Shown here: in pieces, positions 44,331 to 51,679 of the stretch
Layout of the letters: the number at the start of each line of letters is the position of its first letter
Numbering within the stretch: position 1 is the first letter of the stretch
Assembly: GCA_001179505.1 (NCBI GenBank)
Contig: CDMY01000347.1
Coordinates: 186,001 to 250,000 of the forward strand
DNA from: Vitrella brassicaformis CCMP3155
Lineage: Eukaryota > Protista > Chromerida
Direction: 5' to 3'
DNA: 64,000 nucleotides
Program-made: the position numbers and the translations under genes
Notes under the pieces: model-generated
Database searches by the model: none
What the model saw: only the letters and a program-made list of their open reading frames with translations
Told to the model about the DNA's origin: nothing

Positions 44331-47300
44331 ATGGTGGGGCTCAGGCGGCAGGTGTGCGCTGTGGCCCTGTTGCTCCCGCTGGCCACGGCGGGCCAAGAAT
44401 GCGGCCTTGTCTGGGAGATGGACAAGGACATCAACTCAGGTGAGTTCACTGAAGGAATGGAAGACAGACAGACAGACCGAAACACACTCACCCATCTGAT
44501 CTGCCTCCCTGTCTGTGTGGTGTGCCGAACAGGCGTGAACATATTCTCACCGGAGGACACTGAGAAGAACATCTCGCCGGACGCCACCCTGTCAGCGTCG
44601 AGCAAGGAGGAGTGCTGGTCGTTGTGCGAGCCGCTGCCCGAGTGTCAGGGGATTGTCTACAGCGACGGGTCCGTCATTGTACAGGGCTGCTGGCTCAAGG
44701 GCAGCATCGAGAGGGAGGAGGAAAAACAAGGCTTCGGTCTCTGGGCGGGCAAGAGGGTGTGCGGCGACGACGCTGAGGAGAAGACGGATGGAGTCGTGGG
44801 GCCCACACAGACCATCAGACACGAAGGTCAGTCAGTTAGTCAGTCTTGCTGTCCGGTGATGGATGGATAGATGAGCTCGTCTCTGTGTCTGTCGTGCTGT
44901 GTGTGCAGATCTCAACATCACTCTGACTGCGCTGCTGACGTGCTCCGACGAGGGCCAGAAGCACCCGTCCTTCCCTCCGCTAGAGGCGGGTCTGCCGCCC
45001 ATCCCGGTGTCCATCCTGCCCCTGCTGAACCTCACCTACAACTACTCCGCCCCCTGGCTGGACCACCCCATCGTCAGTGAGCCCTTCACCTTCACCTTAA
45101 CGGCCGATGCAGATGACCCCGACGAGGCGTCCAACGTGCCGATCCGTGCGTCGATCAAAGGGATGGATGCCATCGTCGCCTTTGGGGACGTCCTGGTGCC
45201 ACTCAACCTCACCAGCGGCAACGAGGGGGAGGGGCACGTGGCCGCCGGGTGCGACGGGCGCAACATTGGCAGGGGCCATGTGGTGCTGCGGAGGGTGCAG
45301 GTCACCCTGGCCGATGGCTATGGCAACGAAGTCGCTGTCGAGGCCGCCAACTGCAGCAGCACCATTCGTAAGTACTTACATTGGAGGCACCACAATCAAT
45401 CAATGAACCCGTCCGTGGATTTTCATTGTGTGTCCTCCCCCCGTTTCTTTTACTAACCAGAGTGTCAGGACAACACCCCCCCGGCCGTTGAGTGCTCGCA
45501 TGTCAACCTGCAGGAGCTGTCGTTCGGTGAGAGGCGGGAGATCGACCCAGGCGCCATCACCGTGTACAACGATGCGGGCACTGGCGTGCACGCGGCTTTG
45601 CTGCACCCCAGCCATGTGGAGTGCGGTGAGGTGGGGCGGCACACGGTTGATGTGGAGATCGAGGCGAGGGACGGGACGGGCCATGTGGCCAAGACCATGT
45701 GCTACGACGCCGTCGAATACAGTGAGATGAGAAAGAGAGAGAGGAGGGAGGACATTCATTGTTTGTGTGCATCATCCATCCATCCACCCATCTATTTTGC
45801 TGTCTGCTGTGCTGTTGTCCTCTCCTCTCCTCTCCTCTCTCTGTGCGTCTCCCTCCCCATTCCAGCTTGTGAAAGTAAGAACAGGACACGATGAATACAA
45901 CGAGACGAGCGTTCGTTATCTCTTCCCCCCCGTGTGCGTGTCGATCAGCGGATCCCCCGACCGACGGCTGCCGTGTGAGTGCGGCCTTCCAGCGCATGCT
46001 GGACATCAACCCGTCCATCGAGGGCTTCGACGACACGCCGCACAACGCCACCACCAAGGAGGAGTGCTGGGAGCAGTGCCGGCCCATGCCCGAGTGCCAC
46101 GGCATGGTCTTTATCGCAGAATACGACGGATCAAACAAATGCTACCTCAAGGTCAGTTTTCCTTCCGTCGCCTTGACCTCGATGTGCCAATGAGTGAGTG
46201 CCCCTCTCTCGTGTGTGTGCAGGGCCCGATAGAGAGCGAGGAGTTCAATTTCAATAACACGCGGATGTGGGGCGGCCGCAAGATCGTCAAGTGCGGCCCC
46301 TCGGCCATCTTCGACTCCCAAACTCCCAACACACTCACCGTCAGCTTCTCCGAGTCCGTCGAGGGGCTCGACCAATACGACTTCGACATCACCAGCGGGG
46401 CCGATGTGAGTGTCAAAGGAGTCCGTGAGGCGGGCAGCAACAGGTATGCGGTCGACCTGGAGGGCGGCATGCCGGAAGGGGCTGTGTTGAGTGTGGCGCT
46501 GAGGAATGGGGCTGTGACTAACGAAATGGGGCAGGAGAACGAGGCGACCGAGCCCTTCGAGATGAGATACGGTACGTGGGCATTATATCAATGGGGGCGC
46601 GTACAATAGATGGGATGGGATCTATGGACTCGCCTGTGTGTCTGTGGTCTCTCAGACACGCAGCCGCCAGCGGTGTCGCTGTCCACATCAGGGCTGCCCC
46701 CCTCGTTCTCCCTCGTCCGCACCAACCACCAGCCGCTCCGCATCCACGTCACCTTGTCAGAGCCTGTCACAGGTTTTGGTCTGGAGGACTTCACTGTGAC
46801 ATGGCCCAACCACACGGTGAAGTGGCAGCCCGACGGCTCCGACGCGCCTGCCCCCGCCTCCCTGGGCAACCTGACCAAAGTGGACGACACCAACTACACG
46901 GTGGACTTCTCATCGCGGGCAGATGGGATGTTCTCGGTGTCCGTGGGGGAGGGGGGCGTGAGGGATGCGGCTGGCAACCTCAATGGAAAGTCGAACCAAC
47001 TGGAGATCCTCAGGGGTGGGGGAGGGAGGCGAGGGCGTATGTGTGTGCGGGGCGGGGGGATGTCTGCACCGCACGCCATGCCATGGATGTCTGTGTGTCC
47101 ATCCAGATCTGACGCCTCCCAATGTGCACCTGGAGGGTCCGGGTCCCTACGCCGCCACCAACGCATCAACGTTCGAGATCCACCTGGTGCTCTCAGAGGT
47201 ACCGTACCGTACCATCCCATCCACCCACCCCCACAACCATAAGCATAGCATGCCCATCGACATACAGCATGTCCCGCTTTCTCTTCATCCTTCCCTTTGC

Positions 47301-50300
47301 AGCCCATCCAGGGCTTCACGCCCCAGACACTTCAGCTGCAGCTGCACCCGTCGGACCCCAGCGTGGCGCTCTCCAAGCAGCACCGCAGCGGCCTGTTGCT
47401 CAAGCACTTCAGGGAGCTGCCCACAGACGAGGGCAAAAACGGCTGGACCAATCCCGTCCGGTTCGCCGTGACAGTGACGCTGCCCGACGGTCTGCCCGAG
47501 CAGAGCTTCGAGTTGAGCATCCCCAAGGAGCGCATGCGCGACCTGGCGGGCAATGTCAACGAGCAGGATGTCGTCTACCACGTGGAATACGACAGGACAC
47601 CACCCGAGATGACGCTATCCAAGACATCCCCCGACACCCTCGTTCTCGACAGCCCTTTCAGCGTCACACTCACCGCGTCTGAGAGCGTCCGCACGCTCGA
47701 GGCGACGGCGCTGCGAGTCGATGGGGGGCGTGTGTCGCGACTGACGCCGCAGGGCCACAATGCGTTTGTGGCTGAGGTCATTCCTGAGACGGTGGGTGAG
47801 ATCCGTGTGGAGGTGCCATCAGACGAGGTGGAAGACTTCGCTGGCAATGCCAATGAGGAGAAGGCCGCGCTCCTGCTCAACTATGGTGAGACCCACACAC
47901 ACCCCCACCCACAAGACTAAACAGCAAACAGCACACCCCCTCTCGTGTTGACGTGATTGCTTGCAGTGCCGAAGCAGCCGTGGGGCATCACCCTCCCCCC
48001 GTCGCTCTTCAACGACGCCACGTCCCCATCTTTGGCCGCCCACCTGACCACTCTACGGCAGGGCGGCATCGCCAAGATGCGGCTCATGAAGTGGCCCCCA
48101 CACGAGGCGCTCACCCTGCTGCAGACGGTGTTCGGCGACGAGGCAGAGGTGGTCGTGACGGTGCCCAATCACGCCATCTCCACCTATGCGGCTGATTTCA
48201 CTGCCTCGCGGGAGCTGCTGAACGGGCTGGCGCCATTCGAGAGGATCATTCGCTACGTCGTGGGTAGGCAACATGAATTCTCCTTGTATACGCGACGCGC
48301 ATGGTGGGTCCATGCTCGCTTGCTGTGATGTGTTTTGCGTGCAGTTGGCAATGCGCCCGACCAGGAGAGCGCGGAGAAGGAGTCGAATCCGCCACTGCTC
48401 GCTTCCCTGCTGCAGGCACTCATGAACCTGCTCAAAGTGAGTGGATGGGATGCACTGCACTGGCTGCAGAGAAGGAAGAGACGCTCACACTTTCATTCTT
48501 TCGTCTGCCTCCAGGCGGCCGACGAGACCCTCTCCCCTCTCCAACAGCGGATCACCGTCTCGTGGAGCTCCGATGCCTTCACACATACCTTCCCACCATC
48601 AACAGCTCGCCTCGCCGGCACCACAGAGGACGGCCATTTCCCGGAGGATTCGCAGGACGTCCTGTACCAGACACTGAAGCTGCTGCGCAGCCAGGGCAGG
48701 GGCCTGCCCTTCCTCTTCTCGCTCAACCCCTATAGGATGTGGCTCGACGGGCGTGACAGCCGAAAGCTGCCCATCGCGTACGCTGTTGGGGCGTCAAAGC
48801 CAATGGTCAAGGACTCCTCCACCAACGAGTCATACGCCTGGGTGGGGGAGGCGAGGCTACTGGCGGCCAGGACAGCTATGGACCGAGCAGGCTTCGACGG
48901 CATTCCTCTGGCGGTGAGTGACATCTACTGGCCCGCCAAGAGCGAAGACGGCGCGAGCACAGCGCTGGTAAAGGCGCTCTTCGAGAGCCTGATGTCGATC
49001 ACGTCGGCCAACAGGACGGTGGAGGCCTGGTGGGGCAGCGGCGATCACGACGCGCCATCGGGGACCCTCGTCAAGAAGGACGGCCACTTCGTGTGGGAGG
49101 GCACCCTGCCCGAGTGCTACCAGCTGCAGCACAAGGTTACGGGCAAGACCAAGGCCAGCCCCGCGCTCAGCCACGAGAGCTCCGCCTTCGCCGACAGCGC
49201 ACTCGCGTGCGCCCAGCAGTGCCGCGAGGTGACGTCCTGCGGGTCGTGGGTGTACCGCTACAAGGCCAACCAGTGCACCACCTTCACGGCCCCGCCCGTT
49301 GGCTCGCTGCGGCGAGAGGGTCTGCTCGAGGTGGGCGGCCTCACATACGTCATGGTCAACGACGAGCCAGTCGTGTCGGGCTCGCGCGTCTGCGAGGAGG
49401 CAAAGGGCGGTAAGCGTACAGGCAGGCAGGATTGCGTGTTCTCTCTGATTCTTTTGTGCTCTCTCCGTCCAGATATGTCCTCCCCCTCGGCACCGTCGCG
49501 AGTGTCCCGCAGCCCCAAGGTGCCCTCGACCGACGAGGGCCCCCTGCTCGACCCACCCAACGTGCCGCAGCAGGTGGCCAACAGCAGCGTTAATGAGACG
49601 GCCCAACACATCCCCACGCCGCCCGTGGTGCCCCTCGAGCGGCTCCTGGCGGTGCGGCTGCTGCTCGACTACGATGAGGTGCTGAAGACGGAGGCGTCTC
49701 GCGCTGACCTGCTGGAGGGGCTGAGGACAGCCGTGGCGGACTCGCTGTGGATTGCCAAGAACGACTGCACCATCAAGGGACTCATCCGGGGGTCCGTCGT
49801 TGTGCTGCTCAGCGTGGCTGCACCGAATGAGTTCAAGGATCAGTCCTCCCTAGAAAAGGCATGGTTTGAGATCCTCACAGGTACGCCTCTCCTCCTCATC
49901 TTTCCCACACACACACGGTCAATACAATCCTCTGCATCCGCCCTCTCCTTCTGCTGCTGGGCTGGGCTGTGGTTGGCTGTGGTGGCTTGCAGATCCGCTC
50001 TCCCCGCTGCGTCAGGCGTTCCCCATCGACCCCTACTTCCCCTCCTTCGTCGAGGTGCCCACCCTCAACTCCCCTCAGGGCATCTTCGACGAGTCATGGG
50101 AGGACATCCGCTCCTCAATCCAGCCCAACACACCCCTGCCCGTCAACAACAATTTTATCGGCCAGGCCATCGGGCGGCACTTCCCACCAGCCACATACAA
50201 TCGCCCGCCGGCAGCCAACCACAACGAGACGCACAGCGGGCCACGGGCAGAGGAGGGCAGGAGTGAAAAGGGCGGCTCGCACCTAGCGAGAAGCGGCTCG

Positions 50301-51179
50301 CCGGCGCTTGAAGAGCAGGGAGGCTTCCCGGTGTGGGCGGCGGCAACCGTCATTGTGTTCCCCTCTGTCATCATTGCGGCCACGCTCATTCTCGGCATAC
50401 GGCGGAAGCGAGCAGCGGCAGCCAAGCCGTCGTCCCGGCCGCCCAGCCCGCAGAGCACCCATGCCACCAATTCGCCCAAGTCGGTCAGCGACCACCAAGT
50501 GACGACTTGCAGCAGGGCGGCAGACAGCAGCGAGGCCCCCCCACAGCAGCAGATGAGGGCTCCCCTTGTGATCCCCTCCACATTGCGGGGCGGGGGAGTC
50601 GGTGCACTCTTCCGCTGCACACGGGCGCCAACCAGCCCCTCCTCGCCTGCACAGCCGGGCGGGAGCGGGTACCTCTCGCCGCGATTTGCCGTCGGCTCCG
50701 AGACGGCGTCGAACGGCAACACCACGCCGGTCTCCGCGGCCAGTGGGACTCCGCGGTGTCCGGCGGAGAAGGGCAGCTTCTGTGTGTGGAGCGTCGACTC
50801 GCACTCAGAGGGGCTGAAGGAGGGCGTGGAGACCTTCCTGGCCGGCAAAATCACGCACGACAGAGACAGGGGAGAGAGAGAGAAGGAGGAGAGTCACTCC
50901 ACCGCTGCTGCTGGTGGAGGAGGTGGAGGTGGACGTGGAGGTGGCGGCGGAGGTGGCGGCGGAGGTGACGAGGGCGGTGGTCGGCACGTGTCTTACAGCA
51001 AGGTGTGTTCGGTGTCGAGCACGCCACAGCCGCCCGGGTCGCCCTCTGCGGGCCCATCGCAGTGGCCGGGCGACCTGTACCTGAGCGTGGAGACGGTGGT
51101 CGACGACCTGGTCGTCGAGAGGCTGGTGGAGGAGGAGGAACGGTCAACCTCTTATAGACCCGACGTGGGGGTGTGTTGA
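44331..51179 (+). CDS. Giant type-I membrane adhesin-like protein: signal peptide, PAN/Apple domains, Ig-like and bacterial Ig-like repeats, GH17-fold domain, third PAN, SEA-like domain, TM helix and Ser/Pro-rich tail
   Basis: PAN: EECWSLCEPLPECQGIVY...GCWLK and EECWEQCRPMPECHGMVF...KCYLK. Ig-like: TVSFSESVEGL, HVTLSEPVTGF...DAAGN, DLAGN, DFAGN. GH17-like: LRQGGIAKMRL, VTVPN, VVVGNAP, LNPY, VSDIYWP. TM: VWAAATVIVFPSVIIAATLILGIRRKR. Confidence 0.8.
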
Positions 51180-51679
51180 TATATATAAGGGCCTTCCTGT
51201 CTGTGGTGGGTTGTTGTCTTTCTTGTACAGCTGGCTGTAGGTGGGGTGATGAATCACGTACAGCTATTTCTGATGCATTGCATTCATTGCATGGTGCTGA
51301 CTGATAACATTATTGATTGCTTCGTGTGTTTTTTCCAAGGGACAGGGAGGGGGGAGGGGGAGGGCATTTCATTGGTTGGCGGTGAATCGCTTGTTGTGTT
51401 TTTTTGCTGAGCTTGCCGTCCATCGACTCACTCACAGATGTTTCACACGTACACATGTTGTTATTGATTCATTCACTCACTGTACACCCGTTTGTGTCAT
51501 AATAATACTGTTTGAGTATTATATCGCTGAGGAGGTCGGGAGGCGGCGGTGTTTATTTATTTGTAAGGGGAAGAGACACATACCATGACACACACACACA
51601 CCTCACTGGACGTGAACCTGTGTGTTTTATACATCCACACGTGCACATGTGTGCTGGTTGGTGCCCTCTATTTCTCTTC

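Follow-up and report, generated by a model that had tools for sequence, protein, structure and literature searches.

Glycosidase folds that have lost their activity are known to serve as recognition modules, as in the insect GNBP/betaGRP proteins (GH16), the chitinase-like lectins (GH18) and Klotho, a type I membrane co-receptor whose GH1 domains are without a catalytic Glu. The principle is the same in all of these, namely that the fold is kept, the catalytic carboxylates are lost and the protein acts in surface recognition or signalling, and all of them belong to families other than GH17. For GH17 itself, Arabidopsis ZERZAUST is reportedly an ‘atypical beta-1,3 glucanase’; a literature search on GH17 pseudoenzymes gave no direct match. 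Here we describe a GH17-like domain in a surface protein of the coral-associated alga Vitrella brassicaformis CCMP3155, encoded within a stretch of 64,000 nucleotides (positions 186,001 to 250,000 of the forward strand of contig CDMY01000347.1) that was analyzed as a whole and is referred to below as the window; the DNA is eukaryotic and rich in GC, and its introns are short and bounded by GT..AG. The explanation that we favor, with moderate confidence, is that a barrel derived from GH17 has been left without its catalytic apparatus and is now a non-catalytic recognition or scaffold module on an expressed surface protein.

Two groups of described proteins invite comparison with this locus. The plant GH17 endo-beta-1,3-glucanases (CJP38, 6jms; barley GII, 1ghs; barley EII, 1aq0; banana, 2cyg; potato, 3ur7/4gzi) have in common with the Vitrella domain the (beta/alpha)8 barrel, homology over about 260 amino acids and the motifs VGN, FPPS, PY and WP, and they are its best structural matches (Z 26-28). 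The Vitrella domain departs from them in its low identity (20-25%), in the replacement of the nucleophile Glu by Asp and of the acid/base Glu by Ala (unless the latter is displaced), in changes at Asp57, Glu280, Glu288, Tyr5 and Tyr170, in the deletion of the GTP.rPG loop and in a match to the Pfam GH17 family that stays below threshold. Moreover, it is embedded in a membrane protein of 1,862 amino acids, while the enzymes of plants are secreted as free proteins. The coccidian proteins TgGH17 and EtGH17, glucan hydrolases of the oocyst wall, come from the same apicomplexan-chromerid clade and combine a plant-like GH17 domain with a Cys-rich accessory binding domain in the setting of a beta-1,3-glucan wall; by description they are hydrolases in which a distinct glucan-binding domain lies at the N-terminus, and the description mentions neither PAN nor Big_12 nor a membrane anchor (PMC3518913). 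The order PAN, Big_12, GH17-like, PAN that we find here is present in none of GNBP/betaGRP, the chitinase-like lectins, Klotho and ZERZAUST, proteins whose functions have been demonstrated.

The GH17 ancestry of the domain emerges from several kinds of comparison. A phmmer search of residues 920-1240 against PDB sequences returned CJP38 (6jms) at E = 4.1e-11 over 260 residues, together with barley EII (1aq0, 6.1e-06), banana (2cyg, 7.1e-06) and barley GII (1ghs, 1.2e-04), and a profile made from 24 canonical GH17 sequences gives a score of 77.9 bits. Against PF00332 (Glyco_hydro_17), the whole protein reaches 25.6 bits (E = 1.2e-05, profile positions 18-244 of 306), below the gathering threshold of 28.2, and the third exon of the domain alone reaches 18.9 bits; its first and second exons had no Pfam match when taken singly, and the best PDB match of the first was only E = 0.47. 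PF00332 is already present in one resource's precomputed Pfam list for this protein (UniProt A0A0G4EZ90; CEM04092.1), the public name of which is “Apple domain-containing protein” and nothing more. When 1.84 billion representative proteins were searched exhaustively with HMMER at E <= 1e-3, with window positions 48347-49090 read through an in-frame intron of 78 nucleotides as the query, the 100%-identical CEM04092.1 itself was recovered, and all seven non-self matches were canonical land-plant GH17 sequences (ferns, Selaginella, angiosperms); TgGH17 and EtGH17 were absent among them. The closest sequences are canonical plant enzymes with 22-30% identity. A profile word search with an alignment of the GH17 domain likewise returned only canonical plant GH17 sequences (16 in number), none of them closer, and no second GH17-like gene occurs within the window. 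A word-based protein search with the third exon gave no match, a blank that says little given that the method is length-limited. Judged by these comparisons, homology of the domain to GH17 is secure and far above chance.

The structural comparison points the same way. An AlphaFold2 model computed from a 25-sequence alignment has eight beta/alpha units, a mean predicted local distance difference test score (pLDDT) of 76 and a predicted template modelling score (pTM) of 0.78; as modelled, the sequence is compatible with a complete barrel. In a Foldseek search with this model, the top nine PDB matches were all plant GH17 enzymes (E from 1e-16 to 1e-13), and GH5 and GH1 folds came next at 1e-05. 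Alignment with VIA-align gave Z scores of 26-27.6 for plant GH17, with a root-mean-square deviation of 3.0 angstroms over about 285 aligned residues; a bacterial endo-laminarinase (6fcg) reached 19.4, and other barrels of clan GH-A about 16. In an Atlas structure search, GH17 clusters were matched at template modelling scores of 0.73-0.75. Among clan GH-A folds the predicted barrel is closest to GH17, and the GH17-type fold that an earlier note on this DNA had proposed from the letters alone is thus upheld by profile and by structure alignment alike.

What sets the domain apart is its active site. The catalytic glutamates of the plant enzymes are Glu94 and Glu231 in barley GII and Glu93 and Glu232 in barley EII, and the barley mutants E93A and E94A yield no products (PMC11080057). 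In Vitrella, joining 48263 to 48345 gives RYVVVGNAPDQESAEKE, which includes RYVVVGNAPD, its Ala encoded by GCG at 48353-55, and the third exon encodes IPLAVSDIYWPAKS, which includes IPLAVSDIYWP with the Asp codon GAC at 48920-22; both motifs are present exactly where the earlier note had placed them. The nucleophile column holds Glu in 24 of 24 canonical GH17 sequences versus Asp1169 here, so that the Glu of the S-E-x-G-W-P motif is not found, and neither is the acid/base motif G-N-E, which reads G1004-N1005-A1006 instead. The 6jms, own-profile and MAFFT alignments nevertheless open a four-residue insertion, APDQ, before Glu1010; these insertion columns are empty in all 24 canonical sequences, and the loop comprising residues 1007-1015 has a pLDDT below 50 in the model. 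As far as the alignments go, the G-N-E motif is interrupted, with the acid/base either lost or displaced four residues into a flexible loop. We word it in this way, rather than calling the residue cleanly absent, because the alignments disagree between Ala1006 and Glu1010. The earlier observation that both catalytic glutamates are lacking consequently holds with one qualification: the nucleophile Glu is Asp1169 in all alignments, whereas the acid/base, despite the Ala that follows Gly-Asn, is possibly displaced to Glu1010.

The absence of these residues from the expected places depends on correct splicing, for which public transcript data proved informative. The contigs of four of the seven public runs matching the window were compared with it over 45800-51400. 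The X5 and X6 contigs, which come from two studies, are without introns and are therefore derived from RNA; run X7 is colinear with the genome and is therefore DNA. The X5 and X6 contigs are joined at 46151|46223, 46571|46656, 47015|47107, 47198|47303, 47885|47967, 48263|48345, 48436|48515, 49409|49473 and 49880|49993, with GT..AG at every joint. All introns around the GH17-like domain are confirmed in this way, CEM04092.1 is spliced identically across the domain, the three + strand exons 47967-48263, 48345-48436 and 48515-49409 share one reading frame, and zero base differences or indels were reported between the contigs and the window. These contigs show the gene to be expressed and its reading frame to be intact. 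As for the GTGAGT at 48914, which the earlier note had flagged as a potential splice donor, it is crossed without a joint by record 3 of X5 (covering 48515-49408) and by records 6 and 7 of X6 (covering 48515-49331), and as a donor it is unused in the assembled transcripts of both runs, bearing in mind that contigs report dominant transcripts and that rare isoforms may escape. Both motifs are accordingly exonic, being spanned by contigs that match the gene model, and splicing does not supply catalytic Glu residues. The 78-nucleotide intron inside the domain, 48437-48514, is in frame and stop-free, and both RNA-derived assemblies lack it; its retention would add 26 amino acids between helix 4 and strand 5.

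The changes extend beyond the two catalytic positions. Asp57, Glu280, Glu288, Tyr5, Tyr33, Tyr170, Tyr186 and Phe275 are highly conserved residues of the GH17 substrate cleft (PMC11080057), and their Vitrella counterparts are listed in Table 1 under the numbering of barley EII, which was checked against the 1aq0 alignment coordinates. In addition, the GTP.rPG loop of 8 residues has been deleted and an insertion of 9-10 residues follows FPPS. The motifs of the structural core, by comparison, are kept, including VGN, FPPS, the second Tyr of YPY, WP and several Gly and Ala. Preservation of the scaffold together with erosion of the active site is what characterizes a pseudoenzyme, and in the aligned sequences this reading is well supported; the barrel is very probably not a conventional hydrolase.

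Several considerations, nonetheless, weigh against a non-catalytic recognition or scaffold module. Glu1010, Glu1013 and Glu1015 lie in a flexible loop beside the active site, where one of them could serve as the acid/base, and Asp can be the nucleophile in other glycoside hydrolase families. Every one of the five conserved carboxylates of the cleft is changed, as are two or three of its five conserved aromatics, and the ancestral glucan site may, to judge by the alignments, be gone altogether; the C-terminal positions of Glu280 and Glu288, in the last beta/alpha unit, and of Phe275 are less certain, lying outside the HMMER alignment and at a model pLDDT of 60 or below. Since the AlphaFold2 model was built from a GH17 alignment, the match of its fold does not count as evidence separate from the sequence homology. 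Finally, no orthologue or paralogue of the barrel was found at E <= 1e-3 among the 1.84 billion representatives.

The loop glutamates are central to the idea that the barrel has kept enzymatic activity, as a hydrolase or as a glucanosyltransferase, and represents a divergent GH17 subfamily in which Asp1169 would act as the nucleophile and Glu1010 (or Glu1013 or Glu1015) of an enlarged beta4-alpha4 loop as the acid/base. Glu1010 is indeed consistently matched to the acid/base Glu by HMMER and MAFFT, the Pro-Asp of APDQ could form a tight turn that returns it to its place, and Asn1005 and Tyr1106 are kept. However, all 24 canonical GH17 sequences are free of any insertion between Asn and Glu, Glu280 and Glu288, which belong to the active-site network, are lost along with Tyr5 and Tyr170, the loop is predicted to be disordered (pLDDT < 50), and Glu-to-Asp nucleophile mutants of clan GH-A lose 100- to 10,000-fold activity, so that we regard a retained enzyme as very unlikely. 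It is harder still to credit an artefact, in which the glutamates would be missing owing to mis-splicing, a sequencing error or the decay of a pseudogene. The donor-like GTGAGT at 48914, the in-frame intron 48437-48514 with no stop codons and the failure of the public model to include a micro-exon of 9 nucleotides elsewhere in the gene might all be cited in its favor, but the transcript contigs of two studies match the model across the domain with no letter changes, no indels and no joint at 48914, the 5.6-kb reading frame is intact, and the DNA run X7 agrees with the window; we consider it extremely unlikely.

A more serious competitor, though in our opinion still unlikely, is that the barrel has become a structural spacer or a protein-interaction module, or that it has been re-purposed for another ligand, recognition being the task of the PAN domains or of an altered cleft. 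An anionic glycan would be a candidate ligand in the latter case because three cleft carboxylates have turned into His, His and Lys. This would fit with the replacement of Tyr5, Tyr170, Asp57, Glu280 and Glu288, all five of them, with the deleted GTP.rPG loop and the insertion after FPPS, and with the singleton nature of the domain, whose relatives have at best about 25-30% identity, as expected under relaxed or redirected constraint. On the other hand, the core and several of the aromatics that line the cleft have been kept (Tyr1106, Tyr1122, Trp1172, Trp1206 and perhaps Trp946), a barrel of 330 amino acids would be a costly spacer, and the gene is expressed with its frame intact. One could go further and propose that a cleft in which Asp, Glu and Glu have given way to His, His and Lys, with several aromatics kept, is a newly evolved site for a non-ancestral ligand such as an anionic or sulfated glycan carried by coral mucus or by other cells. 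In that event the protein would be a chromerid receptor for host or partner recognition, a free-living forerunner of the apicomplexan PAN-type adhesins, and part of a Vitrella-specific receptor set that reuses dead GH16 and GH17 folds; we deem this extended proposal quite unlikely.

If the barrel is indeed a non-catalytic recognition or scaffold module, as we favor, it would no longer hydrolyse beta-1,3-glucan, and the immunoglobulin (Ig)-domain stalk would hold it off the membrane alongside the lectin-type PAN domains. The likeliest ligand would be a wall or environmental polysaccharide, conceivably the alga's own wall glucan, a laminarin-type glucan, or glycans of coral or other cell surfaces, and the host protein would serve for adhesion, as a tether between wall and membrane or as a sensor. 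As to context, the coccidian relatives of Vitrella have a plant-like GH17, and their oocyst wall contains beta-1,3-glucan (PMC3518913); chromerids possess many lineage-specific extracellular proteins that are thought to serve recognition (PMC4501334). That the barrel binds a glycan is a prediction to which we would give roughly even chances. That this glycan is beta-1,3-glucan is a more doubtful prediction; such a ligand is plausible from ancestry and context and is to be taken as putative only, and the original specificity may not survive because the cleft has been remodelled so far.

Should the favored explanation be true, this GH17-derived example in a membrane receptor would extend the theme of dead glycosidases, hitherto represented by GH16, GH18 and GH1, to the closest photosynthetic relatives of the apicomplexan parasites, and it would provide a way into the question of how walls, partners or coral surfaces are sensed by chromerids or serve for their attachment. 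Two gains for annotation come with it, namely a GH17-like barrel lying under the Pfam threshold and a gene model that is without a micro-exon of 9 nucleotides. The gene itself is already public. The value of the example is limited by the fact that we are dealing with a singleton domain in one species and that the general principle is already known.

Table 1. Features of the Vitrella gene and its product, with coordinates in the window; cleft residues are named as barley EII residue, then Vitrella residue
Feature	Window position	Strand	Basis or remark
Coding region	44331..51179	+	14 annotated exons; ATG 44331, stop 51177-79; exact match of CEM04092.1 to the window
Putative signal peptide MVGLRRQVCAVALLLPLATAG, aa 1-21	44331..44393	+	Hydrophobic N-terminus, read from the protein sequence
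PAN/Apple domain 1, aa 51-94	44574..44705	+	Pfam PAN_4, stretch 55-92; 37.7 bits (whole protein), cut-off 27
Micro-exon of 9 nucleotides, CTTGTGAAA	45866..45874	+	Loose ends of X5 and X6 contigs before 45949, read against the genome
PAN/Apple domain 2, aa ~397-443	46014..46225, across intron 46152-46222	+	Pfam PAN_1, 26.2 bits, cut-off 21.4
Four Big_12 Ig-like domains, aa ~455-903	46259..47885, introns included	+	Pfam PF19078, E = 1.5e-24, 4 stretches
GH17-like (beta/alpha)8 domain, aa 904-1235	47967..49120; exons 47967-48263, 48345-48436, 48515-49120; introns 48264-48344, 48437-48514	+	
Ala1006, canonical acid/base position	48353..48355	+	Directly after Gly1004-Asn1005, end of strand 4; opposite Glu93/94 in the 1aq0 and 2cyg alignments
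Glu1010, four residues downstream	48365..48367	+	Aligned with the acid/base Glu by HMMER (6jms, own profile) and MAFFT
Asp1169, nucleophile position (AVSDIYWP vs VSESGWP)	48920..48922	+	All alignments, high posterior probability
PAN/Apple domain 3, aa ~1234-1326	49115..49393	+	Pfam PAN_1, 22.7-25.4 bits, cut-off 21.4
Juxtamembrane module, aa ~1380-1467, contains GSVVV	49616..49880	+	Motif read from the sequence
Single transmembrane helix, aa 1581-1603	50331..50399	+	Kyte-Doolittle, sole strong segment (2.46)
Cleft: Asp57 to His972			
Cleft: Glu280 to His1211			Low-confidence alignment
Cleft: Glu288 to Lys1220			Low-confidence alignment
Cleft: Tyr5 to Leu913			
Cleft: Tyr33 to Trp946 or Met944			Trp946 by HMMER, Met944 by MAFFT
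Cleft: Tyr170 to Asn1104			
Cleft: Tyr186, kept as Tyr1122			
Cleft: Phe275 to Trp1206			Aromatic kept; low-confidence alignment

The remaining features of the host protein are collected in Table 1. PAN/Apple domains (PF00024 / PF14295) are above the gathering threshold on the whole protein (PAN_1 51.6 bits, PAN_4 37.7 bits) and, with a cut-off of 21.4, individual domains reach 26.2 and 25.4 bits, the N-terminal PAN copy being sub-threshold when scored alone. With its signal peptide, three PAN domains and one transmembrane helix, the host protein is, by these predicted features, a type I, single-pass membrane surface protein, in keeping with the PAN/Apple-bearing surface protein suggested before. 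The “giant adhesin” of the same note has, by contrast, to be given up, inasmuch as the length of the transcript contig and the signal peptide that fixes the start at the ATG at 44331 rule out such a size; at about 1,860 amino acids, the protein is large only. The X5 contig of 6,064 nucleotides is consistent with a 5' untranslated region of 260 nucleotides, the coding sequence and a 3' untranslated region of 206 nucleotides, and the 3' end of the transcript lies near 51385.

Along the ectodomain, a Cys-containing region lies between PAN 1 and PAN 2 (residues ~120-390), and its residues ~120-374 (window 44690-45721) matched no Pfam family at E <= 0.01. Big_12, which forms the stalk here in a eukaryotic surface protein, is a family described as bacterial Ig-like, and there is roughly one exon per domain. 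PAN domain 3 begins directly after the barrel and is followed by a Ser/Pro-rich linker and then by a juxtamembrane module of about 90 amino acids on the outer side. In its pattern of hydrophobic and helical stretches this module looks SEA-like, and its GSVVV (residues 1438-1442, window 49790-49804) is identical to the classical autoproteolysis site of SEA domains. The module matched no Pfam family at E <= 1, SEA (PF01390) included, and no PDB sequence, and a word-based protein search with this region as the query recovered nothing beyond the host protein, a blank that again says little with a length-limited method. Its Atlas feature score to a SEA cluster is 0.84, and a single-sequence AlphaFold2 model (pLDDT 43) is too poor to inform. 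From its motif and pattern, the module is possibly SEA-like.

On the inner side, the transmembrane helix is followed by RRKR and then by a low-complexity, disordered cytoplasmic tail of about 260 amino acids (residues 1604-1862), which had no family match and holds a Gly-rich run with Arg, GGGGGGGRGGGGGGGGGGDEGGG, at window positions 50896-50968. The micro-exon mentioned above is flanked by ..CCAG| and |GTAAGA in the genome, and the loose ends of the contigs read ...GAATACA followed by CTTGTGAAA. The CEM04092.1 model joins 45721 straight to 45949 without it; its inclusion adds three in-frame residues, one of them a Cys, and gives a protein of 1,865 amino acids.

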